DNA from: Schmidtea nova
Lineage: Eukaryota
Length of the DNA: 64,000 bases
Assembly (NCBI GenBank): GCA_044892505.1
Contig: CM097882.1
Span: 142,972,001-143,036,000, forward strand
Direction: 5' to 3'
Position numbers and translations under genes: made by a program. Below the pieces are notes generated by a model. That model did no database searches and was not told the DNA's origin. It was given only the letters and a program-made list of their open reading frames with translations. This document shows, one piece after another, positions 10,008 to 63,249 of this stretch (its first letter is position 1; each line of letters begins with the position of its first letter).

Positions 10008-12229
10008 GGTGTGCGGACGATTCATCCCTGGACGATTCATCCCTGGACGATTCATCCCTGGACGATTCATCCCTGGACGATTCATCCCTGGACGATTCAT
10101 CTCTGGACGATTCATCACTGGACGATTCATCCAGGAAAACTCATCATAGGACCATTAATCCAAATTAAATAACGAATTTACTGGAGTAACTAGTGCAAAA
10201 GTTACTGATTGTGAATTTATAGTGCTTTGGGTCTTGTTATATTTTTAAACGAAATATCCTTGTATCAATAAACATTATCAAATTATATGAAACAAAATAA
10301 AGTTTTAATTGTGTTACAAATGCGCAATTGCACGAAGATACAATAACACATTTATTTTTCTGTATCCACCAACAGCACGTCTAACTCTTTCGATCCAAGT
10401 CGCGATATTTCTTGACACCAATTTTCTGGATACCAGTAGTTGCTTGCATGAATGCTGTCTTCTGTTTCTGACTATCTTTCTCAACCCCTTCAATCATTAA
10501 CCATAGTGAAGGATGAATGCACATGAAGAGTGATTGGACGCCATGATGTCAGCCTTCCACCATGTTTGTTGTACGAGCTATACCATCTCCAGCTGATTCG
10601 TACCAATGCCACATCGGGATTGGAAACATATCTGAGCCATAATTGTTGCCTCTGTCTTGGAGTCATCGACGTCTAATTTAGGTGTGCTCGAAGTAAGATA
10701 GAAATTCGTTCATTCTTTCATGTTCTGCCATGTCTTCAGCTAGCAAGTTGAATGATTCAGCAACATCATCAACCGGAACATGTGCAAGTGCTGATAAACA
10801 TCGAACACTTCCACACAGCACATCGTCAGTTTCGTAATCGTTCTCCATACCAAATTCATTCACCTTGCGAAGAACATTCTGGTTGAGATGAAAGTAACAT
10901 CCTGTTATCGAAGCTCCTGAAAATGCTTGTGAAAATGCTCCCATTGTCGCTGACTCAAAATCGGTTAAGATCGTTTTTGGTGCAGTTCTTGGCATAAGAT
11001 TCTTGAATTCCATTATAAGATGGTTATAGGTTGATCGGGTCTTGTTCGGCAATAGATAATATACTACGGCAGGATTTATTCCTTTGATGAACTGAAAATG
11101 TTTACTGTACATCTGGAAAAAGATTGAGAGTACCACCTTGAAAGTGCCATCAGCCAATCAGATGTCGGATTTGGCTAGACCACCAAGAGGCATTCTTTCG
11201 ACCAAGATGATAAGCCGATCATACCCGATCCAAAATCAAATAATAATAGATTGATAAATTTTGATGGGATATCAAAGCTGAGATCAGTTGGTGTTTGTGG
11301 TAAGGTCTGCTGGTTATCACCGCTTGACAATGCAGTTTGACGATGACGACGCATAACACGGTTTAGAAAGGTTTTCTTAAGCAAGGCCATCGATACATGT
11401 GGACCCAAATCAACCATAACCGCACCAGAAAACGAACATGGTGTTGCTACAGTTTCTGTCATTTTCTTCTTCATGTCTCCGAAAGCGGCTCGTGCAAGTG
11501 CTTTATGACATTACTGATATGAGTGTGGTCTGGTGACTGATCTCCGATCTATCTGTTAGCAGTCGTGCTTTGCAGTTGAAAACCTGGTGTTTGCAACACC
11601 ACCATTGTGTTTGTCCTTGTGCGTTCTCTCTTTTTCTTCAGTATTCGTAGTTTCGATGTATGACTGTTTGCTTTCCACGTTTCGATGTTCCAAAGTTTAC
11701 TGTTGTCATAACGTATTTATTTTATGGTTTTTATTAATTGTTTTTCATTAAGTAATCAATAAGCCTATTTATTTATTGAGATTTATTCGTTTATGATTAA
11801 AATAAAATCATGAAATAACCTATTTATACCAAGACTATATTATAAAAATTGCGAAAAAAAACTTTATATGAAACTATGAAAAAGCTTTCGTGTCACGTAC
11901 TTTGAATCATGACGTTACCGTGGTATTAATATGGCCAACCATTGTATATATAGATATACAACGTTGCATAAAATTTTAAAACTTTATTACAACGGCAAAT
12001 TGTATTGGAAATTTGGCTTGTTATGGTATAACCTCTGATATTGACAATAGAAGGGGAATTAAAACACCATAACTTAATTGCTAAGCACACTCATATAATA
12101 CTGTAAAAATGACTTCTTTTCAATTTATTTATTTTGGATGAATGGTCCTGAGATGAGTTTTCCGGGATGAATCGTCCAAGGATGAATCCTCAACTGGATG
12201 AATCGTTCGGGATGAACAGTCCCAAATTC
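10008..12229 (-). mobile_element. MULE (Mutator-like) DNA transposon, decayed
   Basis: Transposase motifs ADGTFKVV, TDFESA and GCYFHLNQ (ORF 10678-11157, upstream piece 11175-11474); inverted repeats ~10015-10170 vs ~12121-12223; TSD not found. Confidence 0.85.
10015..10134. repeat. 15-bp tandem repeat GGACGATTCATCCCT x8 in the left MULE TIR
   Basis: Direct count; inverted degenerate copies at 12136-12223. Confidence 0.95.
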
Positions 12230-16429: not shown

Positions 16430-17463
16430 TATATGAAATTTCTAAATTAAATTATATATATTTTCAATAATACATGTATTTTATCTAAAGAAATTAATCA
16501 ATGATAATCATCTTCAAACTGTATCAAAATTTTGATAGAGTTTGACGATGATTATCATTAATTAATTTGCTTACATATGTATTTAGTTGTCTGATTTATT
16601 CTCATTGTTCTCTTGCAATCTTCGTGTTATTTACTATATAAATTTACAGCTGAGTTCGTGTAAATTCATGTTTATTTTTAATATATGTTTTATTTTTATT
16701 ATATACCTATTGTAAGATAATTTTAAGAGATTTATTAGGCGATTATGTAAGATTTTAATTATAAACTTCTTGTGCACGATCAGATTTTGAGGTAATCTCT
16801 TCATTTAAACAAATTAAATTTTTGATTTCACCTGCTGGGTTTATGGGTGTGTTTTAAATAATTAATAATAAATAATTAAACAAATAATAATAAATAAGTA
16901 TACTAGGGATGCCTCACCCATAACCATACATAAAAACAAATCGTCTCACTCGCGCGCCCCTAAGTATTCCCTATCTAGTTAGGTTGGAACTGCGTGCGGC
17001 GGTTGAAAAATGATGGGCAGGTGAGCTCCATCGCTGGAACTACTCCCCATTTATTTTCACGGGCCCCTGCTGCCTGCTAGGAGGTCTTACACTGGTATTC
17101 TATCGTCATCTACGCTTAACTTCAAACAAAAATCGTATTTCAACTAAAAATTTAAGTCAGCTACAATTCCTGAATTTCGAAAAACGAAATAAAGTGATAC
17201 ATCGTAAAAATTCATTTATTTATAAAAATTCTCGGAAATCTAATTTATTAAGTATAACTGTTAAAAAACCCAAAATCACCACTATGTCGTTGCATCGCTA
17301 TGTGCAAAAAATTCTTGATCGAATTCGTCTTGCGATAATTTTAATTCTGAACTTAAATCACCAGGTGAAATGTAAAATTCGTGTAAGTAGTGAGATAATG
17401 GCCCTTTGGCGCACTTAAATTCTACCCACCCCCCCCCCCACCCCCCTAGAAAATTTTTTTCTC

Positions 17464-17820
17464 TGCGTTGACGGGCCACTATGTTTTTTCTGGCAATTTT
17501 TGTATTGGAAATTTATTGTCGGTCTTTTGTACAGGTGCGTTGACGGGCCACTATGTTTTTCTGGTCATTATTGTATTGGAAATTTATTGTCGGTCTTTTG
17601 TACAGGTGCGTTAGCGGGCCATTATGTTTTTGGGTCAATCTTTGTATTGGAAAATTTTCGTCGGTCTTTTGTACAGGTGCGTTAGCGGGCCATTATGTTT
17701 TTGGGTCAATCTTTGTATTGGAAAATTTTCGTCGGTCTTTTGTACAGGTGCGTTAGCGGGCCATTATGTTTTTGGATCGATCTTTTTTATTGGAAAATTT
17801 TTGTCGGTCTTTTGTACAGG
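17464..17820. repeat. 71-bp subterminal tandem repeat, 5 units (left arm)
   Basis: Unit starts at 17464, 17536, 17607, 17678, 17749. Confidence 0.95.
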
Positions 17821-18363
17821 GATTTTGGGCTCCGAGATTTTTCTCAGGCAAAAAGGGACTGGTATTTTGTACATGGAATTTTGGTCGAGGTTTTTGTAAA
17901 GCATTTTCTACTCCCAGATCCTATCTAGGACAAAAAGAGACTCTAGTAATTATTATACAGAAATTTTCAAGAGATTTTTATGGTAAATAAAAACACGTGT
18001 AAATTTATCAAAATGTTAAATAGATTTAAATGGTTTTTATTTCTATGGTAAAATACAAAGACAAAAGAATGACATAATATTTAAAATTTAAGAAAAAAAA
18101 GGGTAAAATCAAGGCAATGTGAGAGTTGAAATGACACAATATTTAAAATTTAATAAATAAAAAGGGTAAAATCAATTTTTTGGAGAAATCAGAGTTGGTA
18201 AATTTTTAAATATAAAATTAAATTCTTTTTCACAAAATGAAATTAATTTTTCACAAAATTCTTTTTTAAACCAATAAAAGTCTTAACTAATAAAAAGAAA
18301 AATTTTTAACTAATAAAAAGAAACATTTTTAACTAAATTTTATTAAAATAAATACAAATTTTA

Positions 18364-21300
18364 TTAAAATAAATCTTCTTCATCGTCTTCTTCTGTAACT
18401 TGATTGAATTCTCTGTCATTAGTGTCTTTATAATGCCCGTATGCACAACTTTCATTTTTTCCCACCCAAACCCTTTTATCATCATTATTAGTTAGTGCAA
18501 TTTTTGAATTTTTAAAGCTATATAACTGATGATTTTTTGTACCTATTCTAAATTGTGGTACACTAATCTCTGAGTTATTTAAATAACATTTTACATATGA
18601 ATCGTGGTCTATTTTAGTATCCTTTAATGTTGCTCCCTTAGCCTTTGTAGTATTAGTTTTACCCAACAAGCTGTAACATTTTGGTCTAAGGAAAATCCAC
18701 TCATCATATCCTTCACCCTTACTTTCATCTTTGAATTTTCCAATAACAGAATCCAATTTCTTGCTGTATAGTGGGTGATCAGTTGGATAATTTGATGTAT
18801 CTAACAAGTTATCATTTTTCATTTCATTTAATAATATTTCTAATTTTAGATTTTTAATTTCTAGAAAAAACGAATCTGTATCGCCTGCTACGATATTTAT
18901 CTGACAACTATATTTGTCGCGATATTTTTGTAAATCTTTGTATTGTAATTCGTACATTCGAAGTTTTGATAAATCAAGCACCGATTGTCCAATATAACTC
19001 GGTCTATCTAAACAAATCGAATCTGGATTTAATAAAGCAGCAACTAAATTATCGTCGATTTTAATAGATTTTTTGAAAGAAGGTTTTGATGTATATTTAA
19101 CTAGTTTTTTCTCCGTTGAACATAATCTTAAATTCATTCTCCTTTTAAGATTTTCCACTGTTTTGCCATACAGACTATTATTGAGTAATTTGAAAAAGTT
19201 TTTATCTAAAGTATTAGTACTTTTCGCCCGCAATTCAGTGTTGGTGTCTATATACTTTTTGAAAATTGGAGATTGTTTAAATTTAACTGCTCTATTTATC
19301 TTTGTGACTTTAACACCAAGTCCTAAATATAATTGAAGTAATCGCCAATGAATTATATAATTATTTTTAGGGTAATGAGTCAATAGTAATTTTTCTACTT
19401 TTGAACCTCGTGGTTTCATTTTTTCTGCAGCTACCGGGAAATCATCCAAGAAATCATGAATTTCAGCAGGTATTTCCAAATCTACCTCTAAAGTGTAACC
19501 GTAAGATATAGATTCAAGATTTAGATTAATACAGTCATGCAAAATATTATCTAAATTATCAGTCACCCAACTAAATTCTCCACAAGGTAAAGGTTCACTT
19601 AAAGCCCATCCGTAAAGATTATTTATATCGATATACAATAATTCTGTATTTTCATCTGTTTTAACGAAGTGTTTATTTACAAAAGTCAAACCTCCTCGAA
19701 TTCCCCCTTCATAAAAGCTAAACATTTCATTTTCTGTTATTAATTCTATTGGTTCATCTAAAGTCATTAAAGAAGATGACCAAGACATGCCAGGAATACC
19801 GAAGTAATTCAATGGCTCTAATCTATTGTGAGCTATAGATTTGGTTCGAAATTGCTGAAAGAAATCAGCCAAAAGAAAGCAATCAAGTTTCAAGTAAGTC
19901 ATCATATAATCTAAAAGAGTAACACAGTTTGTTTCTGTCCAAATCAGTTGTGCCTTTTCATATTCTTCTTTTGAAACACCTTTCCAGATTGGTGGTAACT
20001 CATAAGTATTTTCAAGTACTTCTAAACTTGTAGCAAAGCTATACGGAAAAATCCCCTTTTCAGAAACTATAGTTCCATTAAAAACCGAATTTGTCAAAGG
20101 TAAAGATTTCAACGTTTTCACTGCCTTTGCCAAAGAATCATTCACAAACTGGTATGAGTCTAAAAATCTTAAACTAATCTTGCCAACATGAGCTATCAAT
20201 GAAATAAATTTTTCAGTTGTAATAGGTATACAACCCAATGACCAATTCTTGAACTTATTTAATCCGTGTTTAAGAATATGGTGCATATCATATCCTTTCA
20301 AGTTATGAAAAACTATTGGTAAAGACTTGTTGATTTTTCTATTAATGTTACACGTTTGACATGCTGCACCTAAATATTTCCCAGTGAAATGATCATGGTC
20401 TCTTACAGGATCTACGATATTTTTCATGCAAAGGTAACAAGTAGTACCATTTTTAAATTGATCCTCTTCAATTTCAGTCAATCTATTCATTGGTTTGTTT
20501 CCATTTTTATTGTAATATGGAAGAACTTTTAATAAAGCAATATTTTCAATCGCTTTTAAAAATTCATCTACACAATTTAGTCCAATAAATTGTTGGTAAG
20601 ATTTTGTCCCATCAAAGTTATTTATTAACAAAAGCCCCGCAGAAATAGGCAAGTGTTTCTGATAATATACATCATCCTTTGGTAAAATAGCTTCAAAGTC
20701 TGCATAAATAACAAATGGTGGGGTAACAGTTTTTGACCAATCTGAAAATTTAAGCATTTTATTTTCCGGGAAAGTGTATAATGTTGTTCCTAGTTGATTT
20801 TTTCTGCATAAAATCTCATGTTTTTCCAACGATATTTTATTTGGGAAACCATTTAAACATCTACTGCACCATTCGCTTCTTATCCTAGTAGTACAATAAA
20901 TGCTTTGGTGACAATTCATTAAACGTTTTAAATTTATAATAGGTACATAATGATATTTTTCCCCTTCATTTAATAACAATAAATTTATAGTTTTTCCTTC
21001 TATTACTTTTGACCGATGAATAATATCCAAATGAGGATGCTTTAAAATATAATCATCTTGCTCTTCATTAATTTCATTATTATAACATAGTACATTTATG
21101 ATCAATCCTGGATTCTTTGCTTCGAATTTTCTGATACTATTTAATTTCATGGGCATGTCTGATATATCATATTTGAGCTCTGACAAAAAATTTATATATT
21201 TTGATACTCTTTCTCTATCTCTAGATTTTAAATCATATTTTAATATAGCTAAAATGCTATATAAAAAACATAAATTATCCTTATTATCAATGTTTAATAT

Positions 21301-22585
21301 ACATCTCTTTCCTTTTAATCCTTGAGGAGTTTTTACAATGCTTCTACCTGCTAACCTACTTATATTGGATATCTTAGTTACAACAAAACTTATTTCAGTA
21401 ATACGATTAAGTACCCAACTGCTACCTAATTCCGAAAATGAAGTTATCTTTTCATTCAATTTTTTAATTCCCTCTTCGAAAAATTTCTGTGTCAGAGGTT
21501 TTGCACTATTGGAAATATTGTTTCTTTTAATTTCTCCATCTTTCTCAAATTCAACACAGATACCAAATTGTATCTTCACATAGCCTATTTCATTAATTAT
21601 TTCTATTAATTTATTAATTAATGATTGTGGAAAAATAATTTGCTTTATATTTAAATCACTAGTGTTAATTTTTAAAATCCTATGCGATCCATTTAAATCA
21701 CTTTCAATGACAGGGAGAGGTTCTATAACACTTCCTCCAGTTTGATAAAATCCAACGTTCCAAAAATCTTCAATCTCTTCCACCGTTTCAATTAAAATCT
21801 TGTTTTTGTCCGTTTCGTCCGCTTCCATCGCTTCTAATAAAATCTTATCTTCAATCTCTTCTTGTAAATTTTGTGATTTCTTGATTATTTCTATGTTCAA
21901 TTTAATATTTTTATTATTTATAGGGTTTTGAGTCAAGTTTGGTCTTTTAAATAATTTTATTTTCTTAGACCTATATTCATTTAAATGATCCTTATGTTCA
22001 TCGTAAAAATTTTTATATGTAAGGGGTTGGGAAGTTTGGCATACGGGACATATATAATAGCGAATTTTATAATAAGAGTGTCCATAATATTGCTCCATTG
22101 ATCGATGACAATTATCGTTGTGGTCAGTTGAAAAGCAATAATTTGGGTATAAAGCACCTATGAATGTAAATTAATGTTAAAAATAATAATAATATTATCA
22201 AATTATATATTTACAAATATTTTACTATATTTATTTACTAAATTAATTAAAATATAATTAAATTAATTAAAATTAATCAATACTTACATTGGTCATTCAA
22301 TACCACATCAGGTATAACTCCATTATTCATATTATTTTCGTCACTAATAATCTTAGTTTGTACGGTAGTTAGTTCAGTCATATTTACATCACCTAAAGTA
22401 AAAATTAAATAATATATTATGTTTAAGATTAAGTACCATTTTCTTCTGTATTTTCTAACAACGATTTCCCAATTGAATTATTGATATTACCTAAATTACT
22501 ACTAAATGATAATAAATTAAAAAATAAATTTACCGTTTTCTTTCCCACTTGGGTTTTCGTTCATAAAACTTGTTATTGTGTTCAT
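18364..22585 (-). CDS. polB: Intact protein-primed family B DNA polymerase, spliced, ~1334 aa; exons 22585-22534, 22490-22437, 22392-22288, 22157-18364
   Basis: ExoI VIYADFE, ExoII FHNLKGYD, ExoIII YLKLD; Pol motifs YIDINNLYG, KLLNNSLYGK, AGDTDS; C2H2-like CSRC..H..C; HNH/EndoVII-like CYLC..DHDH..CQTCN; three GT-AG phase-1 introns add 90 in-frame codons to the 1244-aa ORF. Confidence 0.92.
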
Positions 22586-22634
22586 TTTTAATGTTTATTA
22601 TTTGTAAAAGTGAATAATGAATGAAAAAGTATTG

Positions 22635-22734
22635 TTTATATATCAAAGTTATTACACACACATAACCTTTGACCAATAAAAATCGAGTAAGGGGTAGGAA
22701 ATTTATTCTTATCAACCAATCAGAATCGAGTAAG
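22635..22734 (-). promoter_or_regulatory. PolB promoter, left arm: two CCAAT boxes plus TATA
   Basis: GACCAATAAAAATCGAGTAAG and AACCAATCAGAATCGAGTAAG; TTTATATATC (TATA on the minus strand) ~50 bp upstream of the ATG; conserved at 63710-63810. Confidence 0.7.
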
Positions 22735-23139
22735 AGGCAGTAAAGGTATTATTATCATCAGATAGAGAATTATGACTAATTATATATTACGTTGCAGTAT
22801 TTTAAAAAAACTAGAAAAGTTATTTCAACAAATTATAATACACATCAAAGTTATAAAATATTTCAATGAATTGCATGCATGTCATATGATTAAAATATAT
22901 TAGACTAAATATTTCAGTAAATTACGTCTAAATTATATTACATTTCAATAATTACGTCAGTTATAAAAAATATTTTAATTAATTTTGATAAAATACATTA
23001 GAATTGTCAATAACACACACAAAACCTTTATAATTTTCATTAGTATATGATAGAAAATTAAATTATATCTACACATGATTACAATAAATATTCGATAAAT
23101 CTATGCTAAATAGTCGAAAAAATCCCAGTATTTTATTAC

Positions 23140-24240
23140 AAAACACGTGTGCATCACAAACATATCAATATACTTAATTTTGAATCAAGCCATTTTATAG
23201 ATATTTAAATTTTATCTATATGTAATTACAATGAAAACTCACTAAAGTTATTTTAAATAACTAAAACTTACAAAATTAATTACAAAACACGTGTGTAACA
23301 CGAAAAACGACAACTTTTAGATTTTGAATCAAGCCATTTTATAGGAAATTAAATTTTACATATACTTTATTACAATGAAAAGTCAATAAATTTATTTTAT
23401 ATACATGAAAAATGCAAAATTAATTACAAAACACGTGTGTAACACCAAAAACGACAACTTTTAGATTTTGAATCAAGCCATTTTATAGCAATTTAAATTT
23501 TATCTATACTTTATTACAATGAAAAGTCAATAAATTTATTTTATATACACGAAAAATGCAAAATTAATTACAAAACACGTGTGTATTACAAACACACTAG
23601 CAAACTAATTTTCTAATCAAGCCATTTTATAGGAAATTAAATTGTACTTATACTTTATTACAATGAAAACTCAATAAATTTATTTTATATACACGAAAAA
23701 TGCAAAATTAATTACAAAACACGTGTGTATTACAAAATACAACAACTTTCAGATTTCTAATAAAGCAATTTTGTAGACATTTAAATTTTACACATATAAT
23801 ATTACAAGGAAAACTCAATAAATTTATTTTATATACACGAAAAATATAAAATTAATTACAAAACACGTGTGCATTACAAACACACCAACAAACTAAATTT
23901 CTAATCAAGCCATTTTATAGGAAATTAAATTTTACTTATACTTTATTACAATGAAAAATACATAAAGTTACTTTATATTGTTAAAAATTTGAAAATTCAA
24001 AATAAAACACGTGTGCATCACAAAATACGACAACTTTCAGAATTCTAATAAAGCTATTTTGTAGACAATTAAATTTTATCTATACAATATTACAATGAAA
24101 ACTCAAAAAAGTTATTTTATTTAGGTGAAATATACAAATTTAATGACAAAACACGTGTGCACAACAATATACACAACATTTTGAATTTTTAATTCAGCCA
24201 TTTTGTAGACAATAAAATTCTGTCTATCTATTGTTACACT
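23140..24240. repeat. 144-bp tandem array, 8 units, each with an E-box (AAAACACGTGTG), left arm
   Basis: CACGTG at 23144, 23288, 23432, 23576, 23720, 23864, 24008, 24152 (exact 144-bp period). Confidence 0.95.
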
Positions 24241-24297
24241 TAAAACCTGATCAGGCCCAAATAAAGTGTCAAAGAACCCGTCAGAAAAAAACAGGAT

Positions 24298-25087
24298 AGT
24301 AGATAGTTATGAGAAGCATGACTCATCAAAATTACGTCATAATTACGTAACATTTCGTGAACCCCCCTCTCCCCCGTTTTTTTTTTGATGGCGTAATCGA
24401 TGACGTAATTTCAAATTCAAATTTTAAATTTAAATTTCCAAAGGTCAAATAAGGTCAAACCTTCAAACAATGGTATCATTCGAAAGGTCTTGAAGAGGTC
24501 TATCCAATGGTCATACCCTCGAAGGTCTATGGAGGGTCCTTAACCTTCAAGGGGTCAAAAACCTTTAACCTTTTACAATACTTACAAGTTATATATCAAA
24601 CAAAAGGTAATTGAGAGGTAAGTATGATGGTCATACTTTCAAAGGTGTATGGAGTGTCCTGAACCTTGAAAGGGTCAAAAACCTTCAACTTTTTTTAATT
24701 CTTATAATATGTACATCAAACAAAAGGTTTTTGAGAAGTGAGTATGGTAGTCATACCCTTGAAGGTACATGGAGGGTGCTCAACCTTTAAAGGGTCTAAT
24801 ATATATAATATGGGTATCAAACAAAAGCTAATTGAGATGTGCACACAATGGTCGTACCCTTGAAAAGTGCAAGATTCAAAAATTTTAAACCCTAGTAATA
24901 TACATATCATTCGAAAGGTATTTGAGAGATGTAAATGGTAGTTATACGCTCAAAGGTCTATAGTCAAAGGTTCCAAGGTAAAATTTTCAAAAAAAAAAAA
25001 TGTAAAGAATTTACATGGGGGGGGTCACGAAATATTATGTAATTATGACGTAATTTCGATGAGTTATGCTTCTCATAACTATCTACT
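24298..25087. mobile_element. 790-bp central core with its own AGTAG...CTACT termini and 70-bp imperfect inverted repeat
   Basis: AGTAGATAGTTATGAGAAGCAT at 24298; reverse complement ends at 25087; 5 mismatches in 70 bp; flanks are inverted (CAGGAT/ATCCTG), so no TSD. Confidence 0.75.
24474..24960. repeat. About 5 degenerate 90-120-bp direct repeats in the palindrome loop
   Basis: Units begin ATCA(TTCG/AACA)AAAGGT...TTGAGA...GGTCATACCCTTGAAGGT near 24475, 24595, 24715, 24816, 24906. Confidence 0.8.
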
Positions 25088-25144
25088 ATCCTGTTTTTTT
25101 CTGACGGGTTCTTTGACACTTTATTCGGGCCTGATCAGGTTTTA

Positions 25145-26245
25145 AGTGTAACAATAGATAGACAGAATTTTATTGTCTACAAAATGGCTGAATTAAAAAT
25201 TCAAAATGTTGTGTATATTGTTGTGCACACGTGTTTTGTCATTAAATTTGTATATTTCACCTAAATAAAATAACTTTTTTGAGTTTTCATTGTAATATTG
25301 TATAGATAAAATTTAATTGTCTACAAAATAGCTTTATTAGAATTCTGAAAGTTGTCGTATTTTGTGATGCACACGTGTTTTATTTTGAATTTTCAAATTT
25401 TTAACAATATAAAGTAACTTTATGTATTTTTCATTGTAATAAAGTATAAGTAAAATTTAATTTCCTATAAAATGGCTTGATTAGAAATTTAGTTTGTTGG
25501 TGTGTTTGTAATGCACACGTGTTTTGTAATTAATTTTATATTTTTCGTGTATATAAAATAAATTTATTGAGTTTTCCTTGTAATATTATATGTGTAAAAT
25601 TTAAATGTCTACAAAATTGCTTTATTAGAAATCTGAAAGTTGTTGTATTTTGTAATACACACGTGTTTTGTAATTAATTTTGCATTTTTCGTGTATATAA
25701 AATAAATTTATTGAGTTTTCATTGTAATAAAGTATAAGTACAATTTAATTTCCTATAAAATGGCTTGATTAGAAAATTAGTTTGCTAGTGTGTTTGTAAT
25801 ACACACGTGTTTTGTAATTAATTTTGCATTTTTCGTGTATATAAAATAAATTTATTGACTTTTCATTGTAATAAAGTATAGATAAAATTTAAATTGCTAT
25901 AAAATGGCTTGATTCAAAATCTAAAAGTTGTCGTTTTTGGTGTTACACACGTGTTTTGTAATTAATTTTGCATTTTTCATGTATATAAAATAAATTTATT
26001 GACTTTTCATTGTAATAAAGTATATGTAAAATTTAATTTCCTATAAAATGGCTTGATTCAAAATCTAAAAGTTGTCGTTTTTCGTGTTACACACGTGTTT
26101 TGTAATTAATTTTGTAAGTTTTAGTTATTTAAAATAACTTTAGTGAGTTTTCATTGTAATTACATATAGATAAAATTTAAATATCTATAAAATGGCTTGA
26201 TTCAAAATTAAGTATATTGATATGTTTGTGATGCACACGTGTTTT
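25145..26245. repeat. 144-bp E-box array, 8 units, right arm (inverted)
   Basis: Reverse complement of 23140-24240. Confidence 0.95.
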
Positions 26246-26650
26246 GTAATAAAATACTGGGATTTTTTCGACTATTTAGCATAGATTTATCGAATATTTA
26301 TTGTAATCATGTGTAGATATAATTTAATTTTCTATCATATACTAATGAAAATTATAAAGGTTTTGTGTGTGTTATTGACAATTCTAATGTATTTTATCAA
26401 AATTAATTAAAATATTTTTTATAACTGACGTAATTATTGAAATGTAATATAATTTAGACGTAATTTACTGAAATATTTAGTCTAATATATTTTAATCATA
26501 TGACATGCATGCAATTCATTGAAATATTTTATAACTTTGATGTGTATTATAATTTGTTGAAATAACTTTTCTAGTTTTTTTAAAATACTGCAACGTAATA
26601 TATAATTAGTCATAATTCTCTATCTGATGATAATAATACCTTTACTGCCT

Positions 26651-26750
26651 CTTACTCGATTCTGATTGGTTGATAAGAATAAATTTCCTACCCCTTACTC
26701 GATTTTTATTGGTCAAAGGTTATGTGTGTGTAATAACTTTGATATATAAA
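26651..26750 (+). promoter_or_regulatory. PolB promoter, right arm: two inverted CCAAT boxes plus TATATAAA
   Basis: GATTGG near 26664, TATTGG near 26707, GATATATAAA at 26741-26750, ATG at 26800. Confidence 0.7.
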
Positions 26751-26799
26751 CAATACTTTTTCATTCATTATTCACTTTTACAAATAATAAACATTAAAA

Positions 26800-29700
26800 A
26801 TGAACACAATAACAAGTTTTATGAACGAAAACCCAAGTGGGAAAGAAAACGGTAAATTTATTTTTTAATTTATTATCATTTAGTAGTAATTTAGGTAATA
26901 TCAATAATTCAATTGGGAAATCGTTGTTAGAAAATACAGAAGAAAATGGTACTTAATCTTAAACATAATATATTATTTAATTTTTACTTTAGGTGATGTA
27001 AATATGACTGAACTAACTACCGTACAAACTAAGATTATTAGTGACGAAAATAATATGAATAATGGAGTTATACCTGATGTGGTATTGAATGACCAATGTA
27101 AGTATTGATTAATTTTAATTAATTTAATTATATTTTAATTAATTTAGTAAATAAATATAGTAAAATATTTGTAAATATATAATTTGATAATATTATTATT
27201 ATTTTTAACATTAATTTACATTCATAGGTGCTTTATACCCAAATTATTGCTTTTCAACTGACCACAACGATAATTGTCATCGATCAATGGAGCAATATTA
27301 TGGACACTCTTATTATAAAATTCGCTATTATATATGTCCCGTATGCCAAACTTCCCAACCCCTTAAATATAAAAATTTTTACGATGAACATAAGGATCAT
27401 TTAAATGAATATAGGTCTAAGAAAATAAAATTATTTAAAAGACCAAACTTGACTCAAAACCCTATAAATAATAAAAAGATTAAATTGAACATAGAAATAA
27501 TCAAGAAATCACAAAATTTACAAGAAGAGATTGAAGATAAGATTTTATTAGAAGCGATGGAAGCGGACGAAACGGACAAAAACAAGATTTTACTTGAAAC
27601 GGTGGAAGAGATTGAAGATTTTTGGAACGTTGGATTTTATCAAACTGGAGGAAGTGTTATAGAACCTCTCCCTGTCATTGAAAGTGATTTAAATGGATCG
27701 CATAGGATTTTAAAAATTAACACTAGTGATTTAAATATAAAGCAAATTATTTTTCCACAATCATTAATTAATAAATTAATAGAAATAATTAATGAAATAG
27801 GCTATGTGAAGATACAATTTGGTATCTGTGTTGAATTTGAGAAAGATGGAGAAATTAAAAGAAACAATATTTCCAATAGTGCAAAACCTCTGACACAGAA
27901 ATTTTTCGAAGAGGGAATTAAAAAATTGAATGAAAAGATAACTTCATTTTCGGAATTAGGTAGCAGTTGGGTACTTAATCGTATTACTGAAATAAGTTTT
28001 GTTGTAACTAAGATATCCAATATAAGTAGGTTAGCAGGTAGAAGCATTGTAAAAACTCCTCAAGGATTAAAAGGAAAGAGATGTATATTAAACATTGATA
28101 ATAAGGATAATTTATGTTTTTTATATAGCATTTTAGCTATATTAAAATATGATTTAAAATCTAGAGATAGAGAAAGAGTATCAAAATATATAAATTTTTT
28201 GTCAGAGCTCAAATATGATATATCAGACATGCCCATGAAATTAAATAGTATCAGAAAATTCGAAGCAAAGAATCCAGGATTGATCATAAATGTACTATGT
28301 TATAATAATGAAATTAATGAAGAGCAAGATGATTATATTTTAAAGCATCCTCATTTGGATATTATTCATCGGTCAAAAGTAATAGAAGGAAAAACTATAA
28401 ATTTATTGTTATTAAATGAAGGGGAAAAATATCATTATGTACCTATTATAAATTTAAAACGTTTAATGAATTGTCACCAAAGCATTTATTGTACTACTAG
28501 GATAAGAAGCGAATGGTGCAGTAGATGTTTAAATGGTTTCCCAAATAAAATATCGTTGGAAAAACATGAGATTTTATGCAGAAAAAATCAACTAGGAACA
28601 ACATTATACACTTTCCCGGAAAATAAAATGCTTAAATTTTCAGATTGGTCAAAAACTGTTACCCCACCATTTGTTATTTATGCAGACTTTGAAGCTATTT
28701 TACCAAAGGATGATGTATATTATCAGAAACACTTGCCTATTTCTGCGGGGCTTTTGTTAATAAATAACTTTGATGGGACAAAATCTTACCAACAATTTAT
28801 TGGACTAAATTGTGTAGATGAATTTTTAAAAGCGATTGAAGATATTGCTTTATTAAAAGTTCTTCCATATTACAATAAAAATGGAAACAAACCAATGAAT
28901 AGATTGACTGAAATTGAAGAGGATCAATTTAAAAATGGTACTACTTGTTACCTTTGCATGAAAAATATCGTAGATCCTGTAAGAGACCATGATCATTTCA
29001 CTGGGAAATATTTAGGTGCAGCATGTCAAACGTGTAACATTAATAGAAAAATCAACAAGTCTTTACCAATAGTTTTTCATAACTTGAAAGGATATGATAT
29101 GCACCATATTCTTAAACACGGATTAAATAAGTTCAAGAATTGGTCATTGGGTTGTATACCTATTACAACTGAAAAATTTATTTCATTGATAGCTCATGTT
29201 GGCAAGATTAGTTTAAGATTTTTAGACTCATACCAGTTTGTGAATGATTCTTTGGCAAAGGCAGTGAAAACGTTGAAATCTTTACCTTTGACAAATTCGG
29301 TTTTTAATGGAACTATAGTTTCTGAAAAGGGGATTTTTCCGTATAGCTTTGCTACAAGTTTAGAAGTACTTGAAAATACTTATGAGTTACCACCAATCTG
29401 GAAAGGTGTTTCAAAAGAAGAATATGAAAAGGCACAACTGATTTGGACAGAAACAAACTGTGTTACTCTTTTAGATTATATGATGACTTACTTGAAACTT
29501 GATTGCTTTCTTTTGGCTGATTTCTTTCAGCAATTTCGAACCAAATCTATAGCTCACAATAGATTAGAGCCATTGAATTACTTCGGTATTCCTGGCATGT
29601 CTTGGTCATCTTCTTTAATGACTTTAGATGAACCAATAGAATTAATAACATAAAATGAAATGTTTAGCTTTTATGAAGGGGGAATTCGAGGAGGTTTGAC

Positions 29701-31021
29701 TTTTGTAAATAAACACTTCGTTAAAACAGATGAAAATACAGAATTATTGTATATCGATATAAATAATCTTTACGGATGGGCTTTAAGTGAACCTTTACCT
29801 TGTGGAGAATTTAGTTGGGTGACTGATAATTTAGATAATATTTTGCATGACTGTATTAATCTAAATCTTGAATCTATATCTTACGGTTACACTTTAGAGG
29901 TAGATTTGGAAATACCTGCTGAAATTCATGATTTCTTGGATGATTTCCCGGTAGCTGCAGAAAAAATGAAACCACGAGGTTCAAAAGTAGAAAAATTACT
30001 ATTGACTCATTACCCTAAAAATAATTATATAATTCATTGGCGATTACTTCAATTATATTTAGGACTTGGTGTTAAAGTCACAAAGATAAATAGAGCAGTT
30101 AAATTTAAACAATCTCCAATTTTCAAAAAGTATATAGACACCAACACTGAATTGCGGGCGAAAAGTACTAATACTTTAGATAAAAACTTTTTCAAATTAC
30201 TCAATAATAGTCTGTATGGCAAAACAGTGGAAAATCTTAAAAGGAGAATGAATTTAAGATTATGTTCAACGGAGAAAAAACTAGTTAAATATACATCAAA
30301 ACCTTCTTTCAAAAAATCTATTAAAATCGACGATAATTTAGTTGCTGCTTTATTAAATCCAGATTCGATTTGTTTAGATAGACCGAGTTATATTGGACAA
30401 TCGGTGCTTGATTTATCAAAACTTCGAATGTACGAATTACAATACAAAGATTTACAAAAATATCGCGACAAATATAGTTGTCAGATAAATATCGTAGCAG
30501 GCGATACAGATTCGTTTTTTCTAGAAATTAAAAATCTAAAATTAGAAATATTATTAAATGAAATGAAAAATGATAACTTGTTAGATACATCAAATTATCC
30601 AACTGATCACCCACTATACAGCAAGAAATTGGATTCTGTTATTGGAAAATTCAAAGATGAAAGTAAGGGTGAAGGATATGATGAGTGGATTTTCCTTAGA
30701 CCAAAATGTTACAGCTTGTTGGGTAAAACTAATACTACAAAGGCTAAGGGAGCAACATTAAAGGATACTAAAATAGACCACGATTCATATGTAAAATGTT
30801 ATTTAAATAACTCAGAGATTAGTGTACCACAATTTAGAATAGGTACAAAAAATCATCAGTTATATAGCTTTAAAAATTCAAAAATTGCACTAACTAATAA
30901 TGATGATAAAAGGGTTTGGGTGGGAAAAAATGAAAGTTGTGCATACGGGCATTATAAAGACACTAATGACAGAGAATTCAATCAAGTTACAGAAGAAGAC
31001 GATGAAGAAGATTTATTTTAA
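26800..31021 (+). pseudogene. polB: Right-arm pPolB with one premature stop; exons 26800-26851, 26895-26948, 26993-27097, 27228-31021
   Basis: GAA>TAA at 29651-29653 splits the ORF into 788 + 453 aa; otherwise differs from the left copy by 4 missense changes. Confidence 0.92.
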
Positions 31022-31564
31022 TAAAATTTGTATTTATTTTAATAAAATTTAGTTAAAAATGTTTCTTTTTATTAGTTAAAAATTTTTCTTTTTATTAGTT
31101 AAGACTTTTATTGGTTTAAAAAAGAATTTTGTGAAAAATTAATTTCATTTTGTGAAAAAGAATTTAATTTTATATTTAAAAATTTACCAACTCTGATTTC
31201 TCCAAAAAATTGATTTTACCCTTTTTATTTATTAAATTTTAAATATTGTGTCATTTCAACTCTCACATTGCCTTGATTTTACCCTTTTTTTTCTTAAATT
31301 TTAAATATTATGTCATTCTTTTGTCTTTGTATTTTACCATAGAAATAAAAACCATTTAAATCTATTTAACATTTTGATAAATTTACACGTGTTTTTATTT
31401 ACCATAAAAATCTCTTGAAAATTTCTGTATAATAATTACTAGAGTCTCTTTTTGTCCTAGATAGGATCTGGGAGTAGAAAATGCTTTACAAAAACCTCGA
31501 CCAAAATTCCATGTACAAAATACCAGTCCCTTTTTGCCTGAGAAAAATCTCGGAGCCCAAAATC

Positions 31565-31850
31565 CCTGTACAAAAGACCGACAAAAATTTTCCAATAAAA
31601 AAGATCGATCCAAAAACATAATGGCCCGCTAACGCACCTGTACAAAAGACCGACGAAAATTTTCCAATACAAAGATTGACCCAAAAACATAATGGCCCGC
31701 TAACGCACCTGTACAAAAGACCGACGAAAATTTTCCAATACAAAGATTGACCCAAAAACATAATGGCCCGCTAACGCACCTGTACAAAAGACCGACAATA
31801 AATTTCCAATACAATAATTGCCAGAAAAAACATAGTGGCCCGTCAACGCA
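31565..31850. repeat. 71-bp subterminal tandem repeat, 4 units (right arm)
   Basis: Reverse complement of the left array with one unit fewer. Confidence 0.95.
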
Positions 31851-33012
31851 GAGAAAAAAATTTTCTAGGGGGGTGGGGGGGGTGGGTAGAATTTAAGTGC
31901 GCCAAAGGGCCATTATCTCACTACTCGTGTAAACTTCAAAATTATCGTTAAAAAATGTGCACACCCCAAAACCTATCGCTATGTAAAACTCACAATCATT
32001 GCTATGTAATAAAAATTGTGCAACACTCAAAATACTATCACTATATGCAACAATCAAAAAACTATCGCTATTAAAAATATGTTACCAAATACTATTCACT
32101 ATGTGCAACGATCAAAATGTTTTATCAAAACTATTCACTATGTGTAACGATCAAAATGTTTAACAAAACTATTCATAATGTGAAACCTCTATTAAAACCA
32201 TTTTACATATAAGAATCTTATCTCACTCAACATTTCGTGGAGCTAAAGAGTCCCAGAAAGACGACTTGCGCCCTCGCAGCGTGAGCTACTGAGGAAGCAT
32301 ATTTATATTTATAAATGACAATTTTATATAATAAACATCATAGAATATCTATTAAATCAAATCAAATCATAGTAACCATTACAAACAAAATCCACAAAAT
32401 TTACATGATCAAAGCTGGCTGGTGAAATCTTTACCGGAATCTGTGCAAATTTTTAATTTCAAAAAAAATGTTCTCCGCGAGTTGAAATTATGAATTTCTA
32501 ATGCCTTTATATACTATTTTTGATATCGGTGTGTCCATTACTGATGCGGGGTTTCTATACAACTGTTAGCAAAGCTGTTGGTGTATGTGGCCGCTTTTCT
32601 GTCGGTTTTCTCTCATCTTACCGACCCCCAACACCAGTCGCTCGGACATTACGTGTGATATCGCATGTTGACTCTGTCGAGACTGCATGCACGTAATATC
32701 CATTTATTTTTATTTTTCTATTTTTACAACATTTTTTAACATTACTAATTAGTTTTCAACGGCCATTTAACCAAATCAAAACACGCTACCACAAATCGGG
32801 TAGTCACTTATTGTTATTGATCCGGTGATTAAATAAAATCATTTCAAATTACTGTTGCGTTGCAAATTACGACAACGCGATTTCGCAACTACACAAATAA
32901 AATTCAATCTCATTTATTTTAAAAATTAAAATTACAATTAAAAGAATAAAAACAAGGTTTTCCTATAACATACGAACCTGTATATTTATTTGTATATTAA
33001 ATTACTAATTAA

Positions 33013-34751: not shown

Positions 34752-35066
34752 TTTTCATTTTAGTTTTTATTTTCTTACTCATATTTTTTGATATTTTTGT
34801 AAATGGTGTTAAAATTTTAGTTTATTTTGATAATATATGATATAATATTGTAAGTGTCAAACACCTTGTTCAAAGATAGAAGGTTGATTTATTAACATAG
34901 TATTTAATCATTAAATACTATGTTAATAAATCAACATTCTATCTTTGAACAAGGGGTTTGACACTTACAATATTATATCATATATTATCAAAATAAACTA
35001 AAATTTTAACACCATTTACAAAAATATCAAAAAATATGAGTAAGAAAATAAAAACTAAAATGAAAA
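34752..35066. repeat. 315-bp near-perfect palindrome centred at 34909
   Basis: TTTTCATTTTAGTTTTTATTTTCTTACTC... / ...GAGTAAGAAAATAAAAACTAAAATGAAAA with a 1-nt spacer. Confidence 0.95.
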
Positions 35067-35293
35067 ATTACTATACATTAACAGTTAATGCAGGAGGACC
35101 CATGCATTAACCAGTAAAATACAATATTGAATCTTTAATTAATTGAAATTATGATTTTTTTGAGTCCTGTCCCAAAACACAACACCAATAAAGAACGCAA
35201 TTATTGCTAATTAAATATATTTGACATCGAAAGATAAAACTAAAATAGGAATTAATTTGTGTTCGGTTCATGAAAATATAAAATTATAATTTC

Positions 35294-35917
35294 TCAGTGA
35301 TTCGATAAGTCTCTTTCCGCTTCATCTAAATCCCAATTGCACATTGACAATGTGTGGATTGAGAGCTCCTTCGCGTATCCCATGCCAACCAAATGGCTGA
35401 TCTTTGATTCGAAATCATCAAATTCATCTTTTCTTGGACCTCCTGCATAAAAATGATTCCAAAATGCTGCAGTTTTATCAAATAGATCTCTGTCATTTAT
35501 ATATTGTTTAGCAACGATTGCATCTTGAGGATCATTCGGTTCTGCTTGAATGAGTAACGAAGATATTCCGACCATAACCGTCAATAGATTTTGAGAAGTT
35601 GTCCATTTATCACTGAGTATATCAAGACAAATACACCCAGTTGCAGAACTGATATTCGGATGCCAAACCTTTGTGATGAAATAAGCCCGCGGAGGCTTTG
35701 TTGGATATTCTTTGGGAATGTTGAAGTCGACTTCGTAAGATCCCTCTTGATATGGAGAACCTGGAAATCCTGTAAAAGTTCCAATGAGTTTAGAGGTATC
35801 GTTTTGTGCATTTAGTCGAACCGAAATCCCTTCTGGATTTCTTTTATGAATAAGATTCAATTCATTAAGAATTCTTTTAGTACCGAAGTTTCTAGGATTA
35901 AGCATTTCAATTGACAT
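35294..35917 (-). CDS. UBE2K: Ubiquitin-conjugating enzyme E2 with C-terminal UBA domain (UBE2K/Ubc1-like), intronless, copy 1
   Basis: KRILNEL, PGSPYQEG, YPTKPP, WHPNISSATGCICLDIL (catalytic Cys), EPNDPQDA, UBA LVGMGY; 207 aa. Confidence 0.92.
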   Translation of the reverse strand: MSIEMLNPRNFGTKRILNELNLIHKRNPEGISVRLNAQNDTSKLIGTFTGFPGSPYQEGSYEVDFNIPKEYPTKPPRAYFITKVWHPNISSATGCICLDILSDKWTTSQNLLTVMVGISSLLIQAEPNDPQDAIVAKQYINDRDLFDKTAAFWNHFYAGGPRKDEFDDFESKISHLVGMGYAKELSIHTLSMCNWDLDEAERDLSNH

Positions 35918-37956
35918 GACATTTGAGTTTTGGTGTTATCTTATATAGTTGGAATTGAGTAATACTTCTTGCAAAATTACGGAAATAATCATTGTCACGT
36001 ATTTAAGGAAAACCTAATAAAATAATACAAGTTTAGGAAATAAAACTAAAGTTAATTGAAAAACATTAAAACATCAAAAGTGCACTTTTGTTCATTTTTA
36101 TATTTCTGTATTTTATCTTTTTCACCATATATCTCGATTCTTTATCCATGTTCTTTTCATTTCTTTCAGACTATAAATCAATAATTTGTTTTTTATTTAG
36201 CAAAATATTTATCTACCGAGTGTATTAGAAAGTCATAAACTAATCGCGATAATTGATATTAAATAAAGTTCAAAATGATATTTACCATTATTAAATGATC
36301 AAATATTTTACGTTAATCCTCAAAATATTATTTTACTTTTTCAATATAACTGTAAAATGAACGAAAGATAATGGAAGATAGATATGTTTTATTGCAAATT
36401 GAAAAGGACGAAAATATAACAGGCATTTAAGGAGTGTATGGAGTAAATATTAGCAAAATCTACTGGTTTAAATAAGGTAATGAACATTTTTAAAGAAAAA
36501 TGGATTTTTTTTTAAAAATTTAAAAGAATTTCGAATGGTCTTTTTACAAAAAGTGAAAGTATTCTGGCCTATTAGCTTCTATTCGAGCGTTTTAATCACG
36601 TGGCGGTTTCAAATGAAATGCTGTTATTTAAAGCACAAAGGTTTCATTGAACTGTTGGACAAAACCTAACTATTATTAATCACAATTGTAACAAAACACG
36701 TAGTGAATATAAATTATCAACAGAATCATCAAATAAACAAAGTTTATAACAAAAACATAAAAAAGTAATTAAAACACATTTGAACCACACAAAAATAAGA
36801 GAAACTCAATAAATTACAAATAATAAACACAAATAAAGAAAATTTAAATGTTTTATGGAAAAGCTTTCGGTTCTTGCAAATGATTTAAATATAAACTTAT
36901 TAAAATTTGATAATTTAACAAAAGGTGTATTTATACTAAAGATTTTTTAAAAATAAATTTATTTAGAATTATTAAATAAAAATGGCAATTTATTCAAATA
37001 AATAAAAGAACACCATTTTTTAAAATATATTATTGCAACTTATTTCAGCAGCTCAGCTGTCATCTTCAGGCTTTACAAAATTTCAATAAAATAAAAAATT
37101 ATCATATTTATACGTTTATTAGTGATTACATAATCACATGTGCACAATCCATTAAAACTTTTATTAACCCTAATAAAATTAATTAAAACTCTCAAAAAAG
37201 CGTGTAGATTTTGTATGTTTATTTTAGGATTAAATGATTTTATTATCAAATCATCACAATTCACACGTTCTGAATAATTTTTAAAACCCTTAGAAAGTAT
37301 GTTGAAATTGGAAATGTCAATACTTTTCTTGCAAGTCTTATTGCGCTTAATAATGTTACTCTTTCTAGCATTTATTTTTAAAATGAAATTTAATGAATGG
37401 CTACTCGATGATGACGTTAGAATGATTCATTGACGAACTTTAAGGGAAATTTTGGAATTGGAGAAAAGGCTAAGAAATTATCTTGTTAAGCAACTTTCAG
37501 TAATGAGATTGGTTTCTTACGAGGTAATTGGTGATTTTCATTTTTAAATGTGCATTAAATCAGTAATTTTTTATTCACAACATTGTTTAAGTTCAAAAAT
37601 TGATTGAAAAATAAAAATTATAAAATTGAAAAAATTGTTTGGTGTGTTTACATTTAATGTTAAGAATACTGTGTTGAATATTAGTGATGGGTCATTGACG
37701 AGTGATGAGGATTGTATTTTGAAGTTTGATCCAAATCATGGTATTAGAAATAGGATTGATAAATTTAAATTTTTTTCCCAGATTGAATGTTTGTTTGTAC
37801 TTCATCTAAAAATAAGAATATTAATTTGAATTATTTAAAAGATTTACTGAATTTTAATGTCAATGATTATTTAACTAAGAATAAAGAACAAAATATTAAT
37901 GATTTTAAAATTTTAAAAGAATTATCAAAGAAAAATATTAATATATGTGAATTTTT

Positions 37957-38415: not shown

Positions 38416-40500
38416 TCACTTTGGCCTCAAGGATCCCAGCCTGATATGGTCTCTGAATATAGTAAAATTTCGTCCTTCCAAAATATGTGAAAAATGTTTG
38501 ATTGCGAGGTAAACTGTTAAGAGTTCGCGGTTGAAAGTTGAGTACTTTTGTTGTGCCGCGTTCACTTTTTGTGAATGTAATTCTAAAGGATCGGGCGTTC
38601 CTTGATTGATTTGGTGCAAAACAGCTCCGATTGATGTGTTCGATGCGTCTGTCGTCAATGTGATTGGAAAATCTAGTTTTATGTATGCCAGTGTATGTAT
38701 TTTTATTAGTGACTCATTAGCTTTATTAAAAGAGTGTAGAGCTTCGTTGCTCCATTTAACTAGTTCATATTTCTTGCCATTCGACAGATTTGTCATTGGT
38801 GCTAAGATTTCTGAGATTTTAGGTATGAATTTGTGGCAGTAATTTATTGTACCAAGAAAACTTCTGAGTTGTATCACCGTTTTTGGTAGTTCAAATTTTT
38901 TGATGCAATCTAGTCTTTCTTAAAAAAGTCTAATTCCATCACTTCTAATGGCATGTCCTAAAATACGAGCTTTTTCTTGAAGAAGCGAACAATTTTTATG
39001 GTTCATTTGTAAGATTTCGAAATGTAGTGAATGAAAGACCAAGTTAATATGCTTTTCATGTTCAGTGATATTTTTAGACCCTATTAAGATATCGTCTAAG
39101 TATGCGACAACAAATTTGAATTTTCCAAGTATATTGTCGATATGTCTTTGAAAAGTTTTGTGCTGCGTTCCTTAGTCAAAAAAGCATGTAGAGATATTTG
39201 TATAACCCAGTTGGTGTAATTAATGCGGTTTTGCATACATATGTGGGAATTATTGGGATTTGGTGATATGCTTTCTGTGAGTCAATCGTTGAAAAGATTT
39301 TGGCGTTCGTTAAACGACGTATAACTTCATTAATATCATTGGTTAAGAATCACGGTTACATTGTTCAGTCTCCTGTAGTCACCACATGGTCAGTTGGTAC
39401 CGTCTTTCTTTTGTACTAAATGTATTGGTGATGCCATGGTGACTGCGATTTTCTGACAATTCTTACTTTTTCGTACTTTTTCGTGAAGTAGCAATGTTGG
39501 AGTAGTGACTATTGAATGTTGGTACACTTCAGTATTATTTACGGAATTGTTCGTACTAGTATTTGTGTTATTCTAACGTTCTAAGAGAGTTTGTATATAT
39601 GGATGTGTATTTCTGTTTAAAGGTATCGTTTCGTTTCAGTTTATTTGATTTTCTGTTATTACTTTGACGGTCTGGTTGTTTGGTATAAATATTTTGCGAT
39701 TCCTTCAGTCGACTAACAGATTTTTTGTTGCTAGGAAATCGGAACCTAATATTGGACAAGTGACATTCGCAAAATAGAATGTCTATTCAAATAAGTTGGA
39801 CATTTGGTCTATACGAAATGTTATGTGTTTAGTTCCAGTAGTATGTACTGATGAGCCGTTAACTGCGCTCAATTGAAGTTTCATGTGTTTGTCTGGGTTG
39901 AAAGTGTTCGGCAGTAAGGATACTCTTGAACCAGTATCTAAAAGTAAATTTAATGGATTTGAGTTGAAGAAAGGTTATTGAAAATGGAAGAAAAAACAGG
40001 AAGTTAGAATGAAGAAGAAATAGAGGAAATTTGGTTGCCGTCGACTTCTGATGCTTGAAGTGAGAACAATACAAGTTTTTTGATTGCTCTTTCTCGAATT
40101 GTGTGAAATTATTGGTTGAATACTTACAACCTTTGAGACATTTTCTTGCTTGATTTTTGTATCGGGCATGGTAAATGCAAACGTCAAGTGTTTTGCATGT
40201 GAATAGTTTATTCTGCCATTCGCAGTCTATATTGCAAACTCTTGCATCTTTTCTAAAGGTTTGGTGAAAATGACAAAGTCGTTTATTTTTGTTGAACGAG
40301 TTGTTTCAGTTGGAACGGTTGGAGTTGTTTCGTGAATGGTTTTTAATGTGCCTATTGTTGCATATTTCTAAGGTTTCTGATATGTCTGTCGTTAAGATTC
40401 TTGCGTTGTTATTAATGAGGGCGTACTCATGTGTATTGAGGTTATATTTTTTATATAATGTATTGAATAGAATTGAAAATTTATCTTTAATATTTAACTA
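38416..40500 (-). mobile_element. Decayed Ty3/Gypsy-like element (gag, RT, RNase H; 3'-truncated)
   Basis: LRSFLGTINYCHKFIP, LTTDASNTSIGAVLHQ, KYSTFNRELL; YLDDILI near 39090; gag CHFHQTF..DARVC near 40200. Confidence 0.85.

Positions 40501-63188: not shown

Positions 63189-63249
<61 letters not shown>

Follow-up and report, generated by a model that had tools for sequence, protein, structure and literature searches.

Within a 64,000-nucleotide stretch of the Schmidtea nova genome (assembly GCA_044892505.1, contig CM097882.1, positions 142,972,001 to 143,036,000 of the forward strand; hereafter the window, whose own numbering is used throughout), we describe a mobile element that reads as an inverted repeat almost from end to end, carries a family B DNA polymerase gene (PolB) in each of its two arms and is built around a second, nested pair of termini. 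We interpret it as a palindromic dimer that arose before integration, when fold-back priming at an inverted repeat led to the copying of a ~7.7-kb unit that had a nested mini-element at its end, and we give this reading a probability of roughly 55%. The evidence that carries it is a step in divergence between two young, nearly identical arms and an older stem at the centre, together with the family-type layout of the inner termini and a target-site duplication that embraces the dimer as a whole. The features of the element are as follows.

17380–17385: left copy of the target-site duplication, CGTGTA (6 bp, identical to 31926–31931)
17386–31925: the whole element, a palindromic dimer of 14,540 bp with AGTAGT...ACTACT tips
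17386–17463, plus strand: outer left terminus, type T1, with an AGTAGT tip, a C-rich tract and a T-run
17464–17820: subterminal 71-bp tandem repeats of the left arm, 5 copies
18364–22098, minus strand: left PolB gene, 1244 amino acids, open
23050–24219: array of 144-bp tandem repeats in the inner left arm, ~8 units
24298–24367, plus strand: inner left terminus (left arm of the stem), with an AGTAG tip, a C-tract at its inner end and a T-run just beyond
24368–25017: core loop, 650 bp, non-palindromic, with 120-bp tandem repeats at 24507–24796
25018–25087, minus strand: inner right terminus (right arm of the stem), ending in CTACT on the plus strand
25139–26335: mirror array of 144-bp repeats in the right arm
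27287–31021, plus strand: right copy of the PolB gene, broken once, by a stop
31565–31850: subterminal 71-bp repeats of the right arm, 4 copies
31851–31925, minus strand: outer right terminus, type T1
31926–31931: right copy of the target-site duplication, CGTGTA (6 bp)

Two 6.9-kb arms with one PolB gene each thus surround a 790-bp core (24298–25087), which consists of a 70-bp stem, starting with AGTAG and ending with CTACT, and the 650-bp loop. From the outside inwards, each arm runs through the terminus, the 71-bp repeats, the outward-pointing gene of 1244 codons and a 2.2-kb AT-rich spacer that ends in the ~eight 144-bp repeats. Without a single gap, 17556–24367 pairs with 25018–31829, and gapped pairing extends to the very tips; the loop is not palindromic (244 of 325 positions mismatch) and holds no open reading frame (ORF) of at least 80 amino acids. 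Outside the tandem repeats, PolB is the only ORF of at least that length in each arm. Genes for an rve integrase, a capsid, a protease or a packaging ATPase are absent from the ORFs of 17386–31925, and scans of the whole window against Rfam and for tRNAs returned no RNA genes. Since it has neither integrase nor capsid genes, the element is at most a non-autonomous derivative of the Polinton/Maverick type, one that keeps only the PolB gene and the ends.

The outer ends bear the marks of a regular insertion. The two flanks are unrelated (67 of 86 positions mismatch) except for the direct CGTGTA duplication, and the 19-nt outer tip occurs at only two sites in the window, both of them ends of this element. 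Because CGTGTA stands on both sides of the tips and the flanks are otherwise unrelated, the palindrome predates the insertion, and the dimer was integrated as one unit. The same observations rule out a chromosomal fold-back that followed insertion. No such mark surrounds the core: CAGGAT on its left and ATCCTG on its right are mirror images rather than a direct repeat, in agreement with a preliminary description of this DNA, which had argued that the core is not an independent insertion.

Arms and stem differ sharply in divergence. Aligned with each other, the arms show 6 substitutions in 6728 gapless bp (0.09%), the "handful" of differences reported at first sight, and their lengths differ by one 71-bp repeat unit and by 3 nt in a C-run, both slippage indels; once these two are allowed for in a gapped alignment, the outermost 170 bp contain no substitution. 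The stem (24298–24367 against 25018–25087), as had also been claimed, has 5 mismatches in 70 bp (7.1%) and a perfect outer 22 bp; all of the mismatches fall in the inner 48 bp, and 4 of the 5 are transitions. This amounts to ~80 times the divergence of the arms (Fisher p = 4e-8). The last arm mismatch lies at 24259 and the first stem mismatch at 24320, which brackets the old-to-new step within 24260–24320, a span of 61 nt that includes the AGTAG at 24298. The preliminary description had expected a step in mismatch density at 24298/25087; the step itself is real (~7% against 0.09%), and its position is known to the width of this bracket. Since an old stem adjoins young arms, the arms must have been copied from one another, from or within a pre-existing inverted repeat. 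Between the right and the left PolB gene there are 5 nucleotide differences, all protein-changing, one of them the stop. With the help of a second PolB-bearing copy in the window (copy 2, listed below), 5 arm differences could be polarised, 2 being derived in the left arm and 3 in the right. This 2:3 split and the protein-changing differences fit a single duplication followed by independent neutral decay of the two arms.

The preliminary description had pointed to a second AGTAG...CTACT pair bounding the centre, and it is indeed there (24298–24302 and 25083–25087). Such a pair carries no weight by itself, however, because the arms of a palindrome complement any 5-mer; the layout of the inner stem and the related elements of the window are more informative.

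1108–3239, plus strand: copy 0, a diverged relative, in which arm-type 144-bp repeats (1108–1500) are followed by the shared junction
46756–51187: E3, a separate non-coding element of 4.4 kb, with a copy-0-type terminus at both ends and a 6-bp duplication, GTTGTC
57172–64000, plus strand: copy 2, a second PolB-bearing copy in left-arm orientation, which exits the window before its centre

AGTAG occurs at 90 sites in the window, counting both strands, and is followed by a C-tract 25–120 nt downstream in only 7 of them; 6 of these 7 are element ends (17386, 31925, 57172, 51187, 1561 and 24298). The inner stem displays the layout of a family terminus, namely an AGTAG tip, a C-tract and a T-run. 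In copy 0, AGTAG lies at the homologous junction (1560/1561 against 24297/24298), at the same distance past the 144-bp repeats and after the same short A-rich motif, where the chance expectation of finding it in a 61-nt window is 0.043. An alignment of the inner stem to the copy-0 terminus also scores better than those of shuffled controls (p ~0.005). On this evidence, the junction of arm to inner tip is ancestral in the family, and the core is a nested mini-element with old inverted ends.

Copy 0 and E3 extend this comparison. The AGTAG...CTACT unit of copy 0 spans 1561–3239, holds a remnant of the PolB C-terminus (2098–2361) and is without a duplication of its own (CGGGAG on the left against ATATAT on the right, 3240–3245). 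Beyond the CTACT at 3239, the right flank is non-arm DNA, not inverted arm. The layout of copy 0 therefore looks like an arm plus a core that ends at the right tip of the core, as the proposed monomer would. E3 has inverted repeats of ~890 bp (47029–47917 and 49948–50896; 88.7% identity, with a gap of N inside the right repeat), which are made up of tandem units akin to the subterminal repeats of the palindromic element, and it interrupts an RVT_1 (reverse-transcriptase) domain. Because E3 has both a duplication of its own and ends of the copy-0 type, ends of this type are used for insertion. At 88.7% identity, its repeats also offer an "old" yardstick beside the 99.9% of the arms. On the minus strand at 9763–9867, a lone AGTAG is followed ~100 nt on by a run of ten C, and no partner was found for it; this may be an isolated end belonging to another member of the family. 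A scan of JGI metagenomes with the 22-nt inner tip returned 3 contigs, with only unrelated exact matches of 24 nt; these contigs were rejected as relatives, as the match lies inside an AT-rich frame that crosses TAA/TAG codons.

The polymerase itself is of a kind that could perform the copying. All family B motifs, Exo I–III and Pol A/B/C, are present in PolB and are invariant in an alignment of 17 relatives. Among these relatives, Pfam recognises PF03175 (DNA_pol_B_2) in 6 of 17 and PF02945 in 16 of 17; the element's own protein falls below the PF03175 threshold, and Pfam gives only an Endonuclease VII-like module for it. Sequence searches of the PDB with the protein and with a 17-sequence profile found no match, and only fold comparison succeeded. 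The predicted structure of residues 441–1244 (predicted local distance difference test score, pLDDT, 88) has phi29 DNA polymerase as its best fold match (E = 1e-20; template modelling score, TM, 0.69–0.72 on the target), the next matches following at E = 5e-11. With phi29 polymerase as the best match, the structural model argues that PolB is a phi29-like polymerase of the protein-primed, strand-displacing type. An Endonuclease VII/HNH-like zinc module sits between Exo I and Exo II (residues ~544–586); since it is found in 16 of the 17 relatives, it is a conserved feature of the PolB clade. The N-terminal 440 residues (window 20779–22098) are conserved and belong to no Pfam family, and across the relatives they show invariant Cys/His/Asn/Asp positions and a C2HC-like finger. 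From these residue patterns, the region could be considered a candidate terminal-protein or processing domain. The third PolB gene, that of copy 2, has ~96% DNA identity and contains at least 4 frameshifts and 6 stops.

Taken together, these observations lead us to envision the following course of events. A parent unit of ~7.7 kb would have consisted of an outer terminus, PolB, the spacer of 144-bp repeats and then the nested 790-bp mini-element, itself bounded by 70-bp terminal inverted repeats that were old and slightly mismatched. In a linear, at least partly single-stranded form of this unit, the right-hand end would fold back onto the inner left terminus, and extension of the folded 3' end along the arm would yield a hairpin-ended duplex. 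A further round of copying would open this duplex, leaving a linear palindrome whose two outer termini are identical and which an integrase supplied in trans could then insert. Folded as single-stranded DNA, the core forms a blunt 70-bp stem with a paired 3' base (z = -14), provided that the unit ends at 25087. Fold-back, self-primed copying is carried out in vitro by phi29-class enzymes.

The preliminary description had proposed snap-back synthesis on a 7.7-kb monomer, and much of that proposal can be retained: the stem is older than the arms, the inner termini are of the family type and the dimer formed before integration. We infer the remaining parts, namely that the unit once ended at 25087, that a displaced single strand was the substrate, that its 3' tip was the primer and that the element's own PolB was the copying enzyme. 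As evidence that would count against it, that description had named a uniform mismatch density, a lack of monomers or core-ended insertions, and other family members without an AGTAG at the inner position. None of the three held: the mismatch density is uneven, E3 is an insertion with copy-0-type ends and its own duplication, and the diverged, monomer-like copy 0 has its AGTAG at 1561.

Several observations weigh against the fold-back reading. A helper integrase has to be assumed, as the element encodes none. The left end of copy 0 lies beyond the window, so that an internally deleted dimer fits this copy as well as a monomer does. Only one complete dimer is present within the 64 kb, and no copy of the core occurs elsewhere in them. 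Beyond AGTAG, the likeness of the inner stem to the other termini is weak (p = 0.05–0.6). Finally, the step is not pinned to 24298, and its position could be as much as 22 bp within the stem or 38 bp beyond it; a clean outer 22 bp has P = 0.14 if 5 mismatches are scattered at random over 70 bp, and this part of the stem may itself be newly copied.

The latter point leads to the rival that survives best, a template switch at a replication fork of the kind invoked in origin-dependent inverted-repeat amplification (ODIRA). Here, the leading strand would leave its own template at the 70-bp inverted repeat and continue on that of the lagging strand, giving a hairpin-capped linear molecule that becomes an inverted dimer in the next round and whose identical outer termini then integrate. 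The monomer could be chromosomal or episomal, and the nested termini would matter only as an inverted repeat, not as tips. An interrupted short inverted repeat with a retained spacer is the signature of this pathway (PMC10766183, PMC4689423), and a switch inside the stem would account for its mismatch-free outer 22 bp no less well than fold-back does. Because the step may lie anywhere in 24260–24320, a free 3' tip and a switch at a fork are inseparable by sequence. However, the proper tips and the 6-bp duplication still demand a free, integrase-competent linear molecule, and the tip at the junction is conserved in copy 0, which the template-switch route does not need. We consider this route a possible one, though unlikely on balance.

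An older origin of the palindrome is improbable. Under this explanation, a very long inverted repeat would be the normal layout of the family, and gene conversion or heteroduplex correction would have homogenised the arms while the region adjacent to the loop escaped. A PolB remnant in inverted orientation may lie to the right of the inner terminus of copy 0, which would hint at a shared dimeric layout; yet the right flank of this copy is not inverted arm. Moreover, the stem is contiguous with the arms and nonetheless 80 times more diverged, and private derived changes in both arms (the PolB stop, the repeat-unit indel) would not survive homogenisation.

An artefact must also be weighed, as strand-displacement amplification yields mostly inverted chimeras (PMC1855051) and the assembly from which the window was taken is scaffolded and has gaps of N. 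An inverted chimera from whole-genome amplification, or a fold-back long read in the assembly, seems very improbable to us for several reasons. The element borders different, unique sequence on its two sides, where the 6-bp duplication matches, and its centre is an asymmetric loop of 650 bp that sits at a natural inverted repeat rather than at a random breakpoint. Furthermore, the arms are separated by 6 substitutions, the 71-bp indel and the difference in homopolymer length, and must therefore have been assembled separately. Least credible of all is the transposition of a mini-element into the exact centre of an existing perfect palindrome: the core does have all the features of a small non-autonomous element, but it lacks a duplication of its own, which contradicts a nested insertion, and copy 0 has the same junction without a surrounding palindrome.

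Fold-back priming before integration thus remains our preferred reading, and it invites a further step about which we are a good deal more doubtful: the nested terminus could be a conserved working part, such that a PolB-only lineage normally passes from a hairpin-ended monomer to a palindromic dimer and back. If such a cycle exists, replication would be primed in two ways, by the folded DNA itself at the inner terminus and by a protein at the outer one, a strategy undescribed for Polinton-type elements, and integrated dimers would be snapshots of the replicative form.

The wider interest of the element lies in how Polintons copy themselves. To our knowledge, self-copying of Polintons/Mavericks has never been observed, and the standard model rests on analogy. 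A palindromic dimer with a target-site duplication and with young arms joined at older termini is the expected product of a self-priming linear, partly single-stranded intermediate, and the element described here would be a natural fossil of such a replication intermediate. The question of replication thereby becomes a countable one, through the monomers, dimers and solo cores of a single genome. The element would also show that a virus-like element can shed all but its polymerase and still spread. More speculatively, a 14-kb inverted repeat with outward-pointing genes is a likely source of long hairpin RNA, which could matter for host silencing of the family.

Relatives of PolB were also found outside the window. 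Among the closest of them, with 47–60% identity, 8 of 11 lie on contigs of 4.3–7.3 kb, about one arm long, a pattern that would be expected from palindromic dimers collapsed by short-read assembly or from PolB-only monomers. A 58%-identical PolB is located on a 16-kb metagenomic contig, for which the gene table gives an rve integrase, an A32-like ATPase and Bcl-2-like and TBP-like genes besides. Going by the gene table only, this contig looks like a complete genome of the Polinton/adintovirus type, whose host may have been an animal.

The remainder of the window is rich in transposons (45164–46776, 51176–51625, 38416–38877 and 10678–11157). These include Ty3/gypsy pol fragments with RVT_1, RNase H and integrase zinc domains, one of which is split by 46756–51187, and a fragment of a Mutator-like element (MULE) transposase; the best named matches of the Ty3/gypsy pol fragment are from invertebrate animals, at 36–40% identity. 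A 1.48-kb segment occurs twice with 96.8% identity (34910–36393 and 53903–55365), each copy containing an intronless ORF for a ubiquitin-conjugating (E2-K-like) protein of 207 amino acids (35294–35917 and 54266–54889), whose best named relatives, again from invertebrate animals, are ~42–45% identical. This segment may be a retrogene or transposon cargo. Just to the right of copy 0, a 51-nt inverted repeat (96%, with a 27-nt spacer) lies between two gaps of N at 3545–3673, and a second short inverted pair straddles a gap of N at 3341–3505; both look like small fold-back elements.

Comparison with known systems begins with the Polintons. Maverick ends carry an (AGT)2//(ACT)2 motif and are flanked by a 6-bp target-site duplication (PMC8097293). 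With the Polinton/Maverick (adintovirus-like) elements the dimer shares its phi29-like PolB, the AGTAGT...ACTACT ends, the 6-bp duplication and the terminal inverted repeats; it differs from them in having no integrase, capsid, protease or ATPase genes, and in consisting entirely of inverted repeat, with a PolB gene in each arm, around nested termini. The inverted repeats of Polintons, as far as we know, measure from hundreds of bp to ~1.5 kb, and the polymerase is not duplicated. In the replication model outlined for Polintons, a single strand is excised, its inverted ends pair and synthesis is primed by a protein (PMC4046053, PMC8097293, preprint 10.64898/2026.07.28.741278).

The inverted dimers that arise by ODIRA in yeast resemble our element in that long, near-identical arms are joined via a short, older inverted repeat and an asymmetric spacer is kept (PMC10766183, PMC4689423). 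In the present case, a 70-bp repeat and a 650-bp spacer lie between arms of 6.9 kb, and the repeat is older than the arms, as expected of an inverted dimer. ODIRA dimers, however, are segments of host chromosomes that the host replisome copies and that selection or telomeres maintain, whereas here the dimer is a mobile element, its inverted repeat is a pair of termini of its own family and its re-integration left a target-site duplication. Another dimer of this kind, with its origin at a short interrupted inverted repeat, is the palindromic ribosomal DNA of Tetrahymena.

Protein-primed linear replicons give rise to comparable fold-back products. Yeast killer plasmids have hairpin and palindromic derivatives, adenovirus shows panhandle repair as well as defective genomes in which a large part of one end is duplicated in inverted orientation, and the mitochondrial DNA of Paramecium forms head-to-head dimers. 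In these replicons, one arm is duplicated in inverted orientation via intrastrand pairing of the displaced strand, leaving two identical, replication-competent ends, as we propose for the element described here. Such products are extrachromosomal and have been seen in culture; we know of none that exists as an integrated transposon copy.

The preliminary description had also drawn a parallel to the parvoviral rolling hairpin, in which the hairpin at the 3' end acts as its own primer and a duplex dimer intermediate results. This likeness holds as an analogy only, as neither a parvovirus-type Rep/HUH nickase gene nor a terminal resolution site was found in the element by ORF and Pfam analysis. 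In addition, its hairpin has a 70-bp stem and a 650-nt loop rather than being a compact terminal palindrome, and nothing in the element points to a packaged single-stranded genome. In the Bidnaviridae, a parvovirus-like genome with hairpin/panhandle ends coexists with a Polinton-type PolB (PMC4938981). For the virophages and Polinton-like viruses of Halocafeteria, which are integrated with 6-bp-type duplications, hairpin-primed replication has been proposed (preprint 10.64898/2026.07.28.741278). Those elements have palindromes of ~52 nt at their extreme ends and are without a protein-primed PolB, their replication genes being of other kinds (preprint 10.64898/2026.07.28.741278), whereas in our case the repeat is internal, a protein-primed PolB is encoded and the product is a palindrome of genome length. 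Our literature search found no report of a genome-length palindromic element of the Polinton type with a duplicated polymerase gene and nested termini. By analogy, the dimer would work like the fold-back derivatives of protein-primed replicons and like the inverted dimers that form at short repeats.
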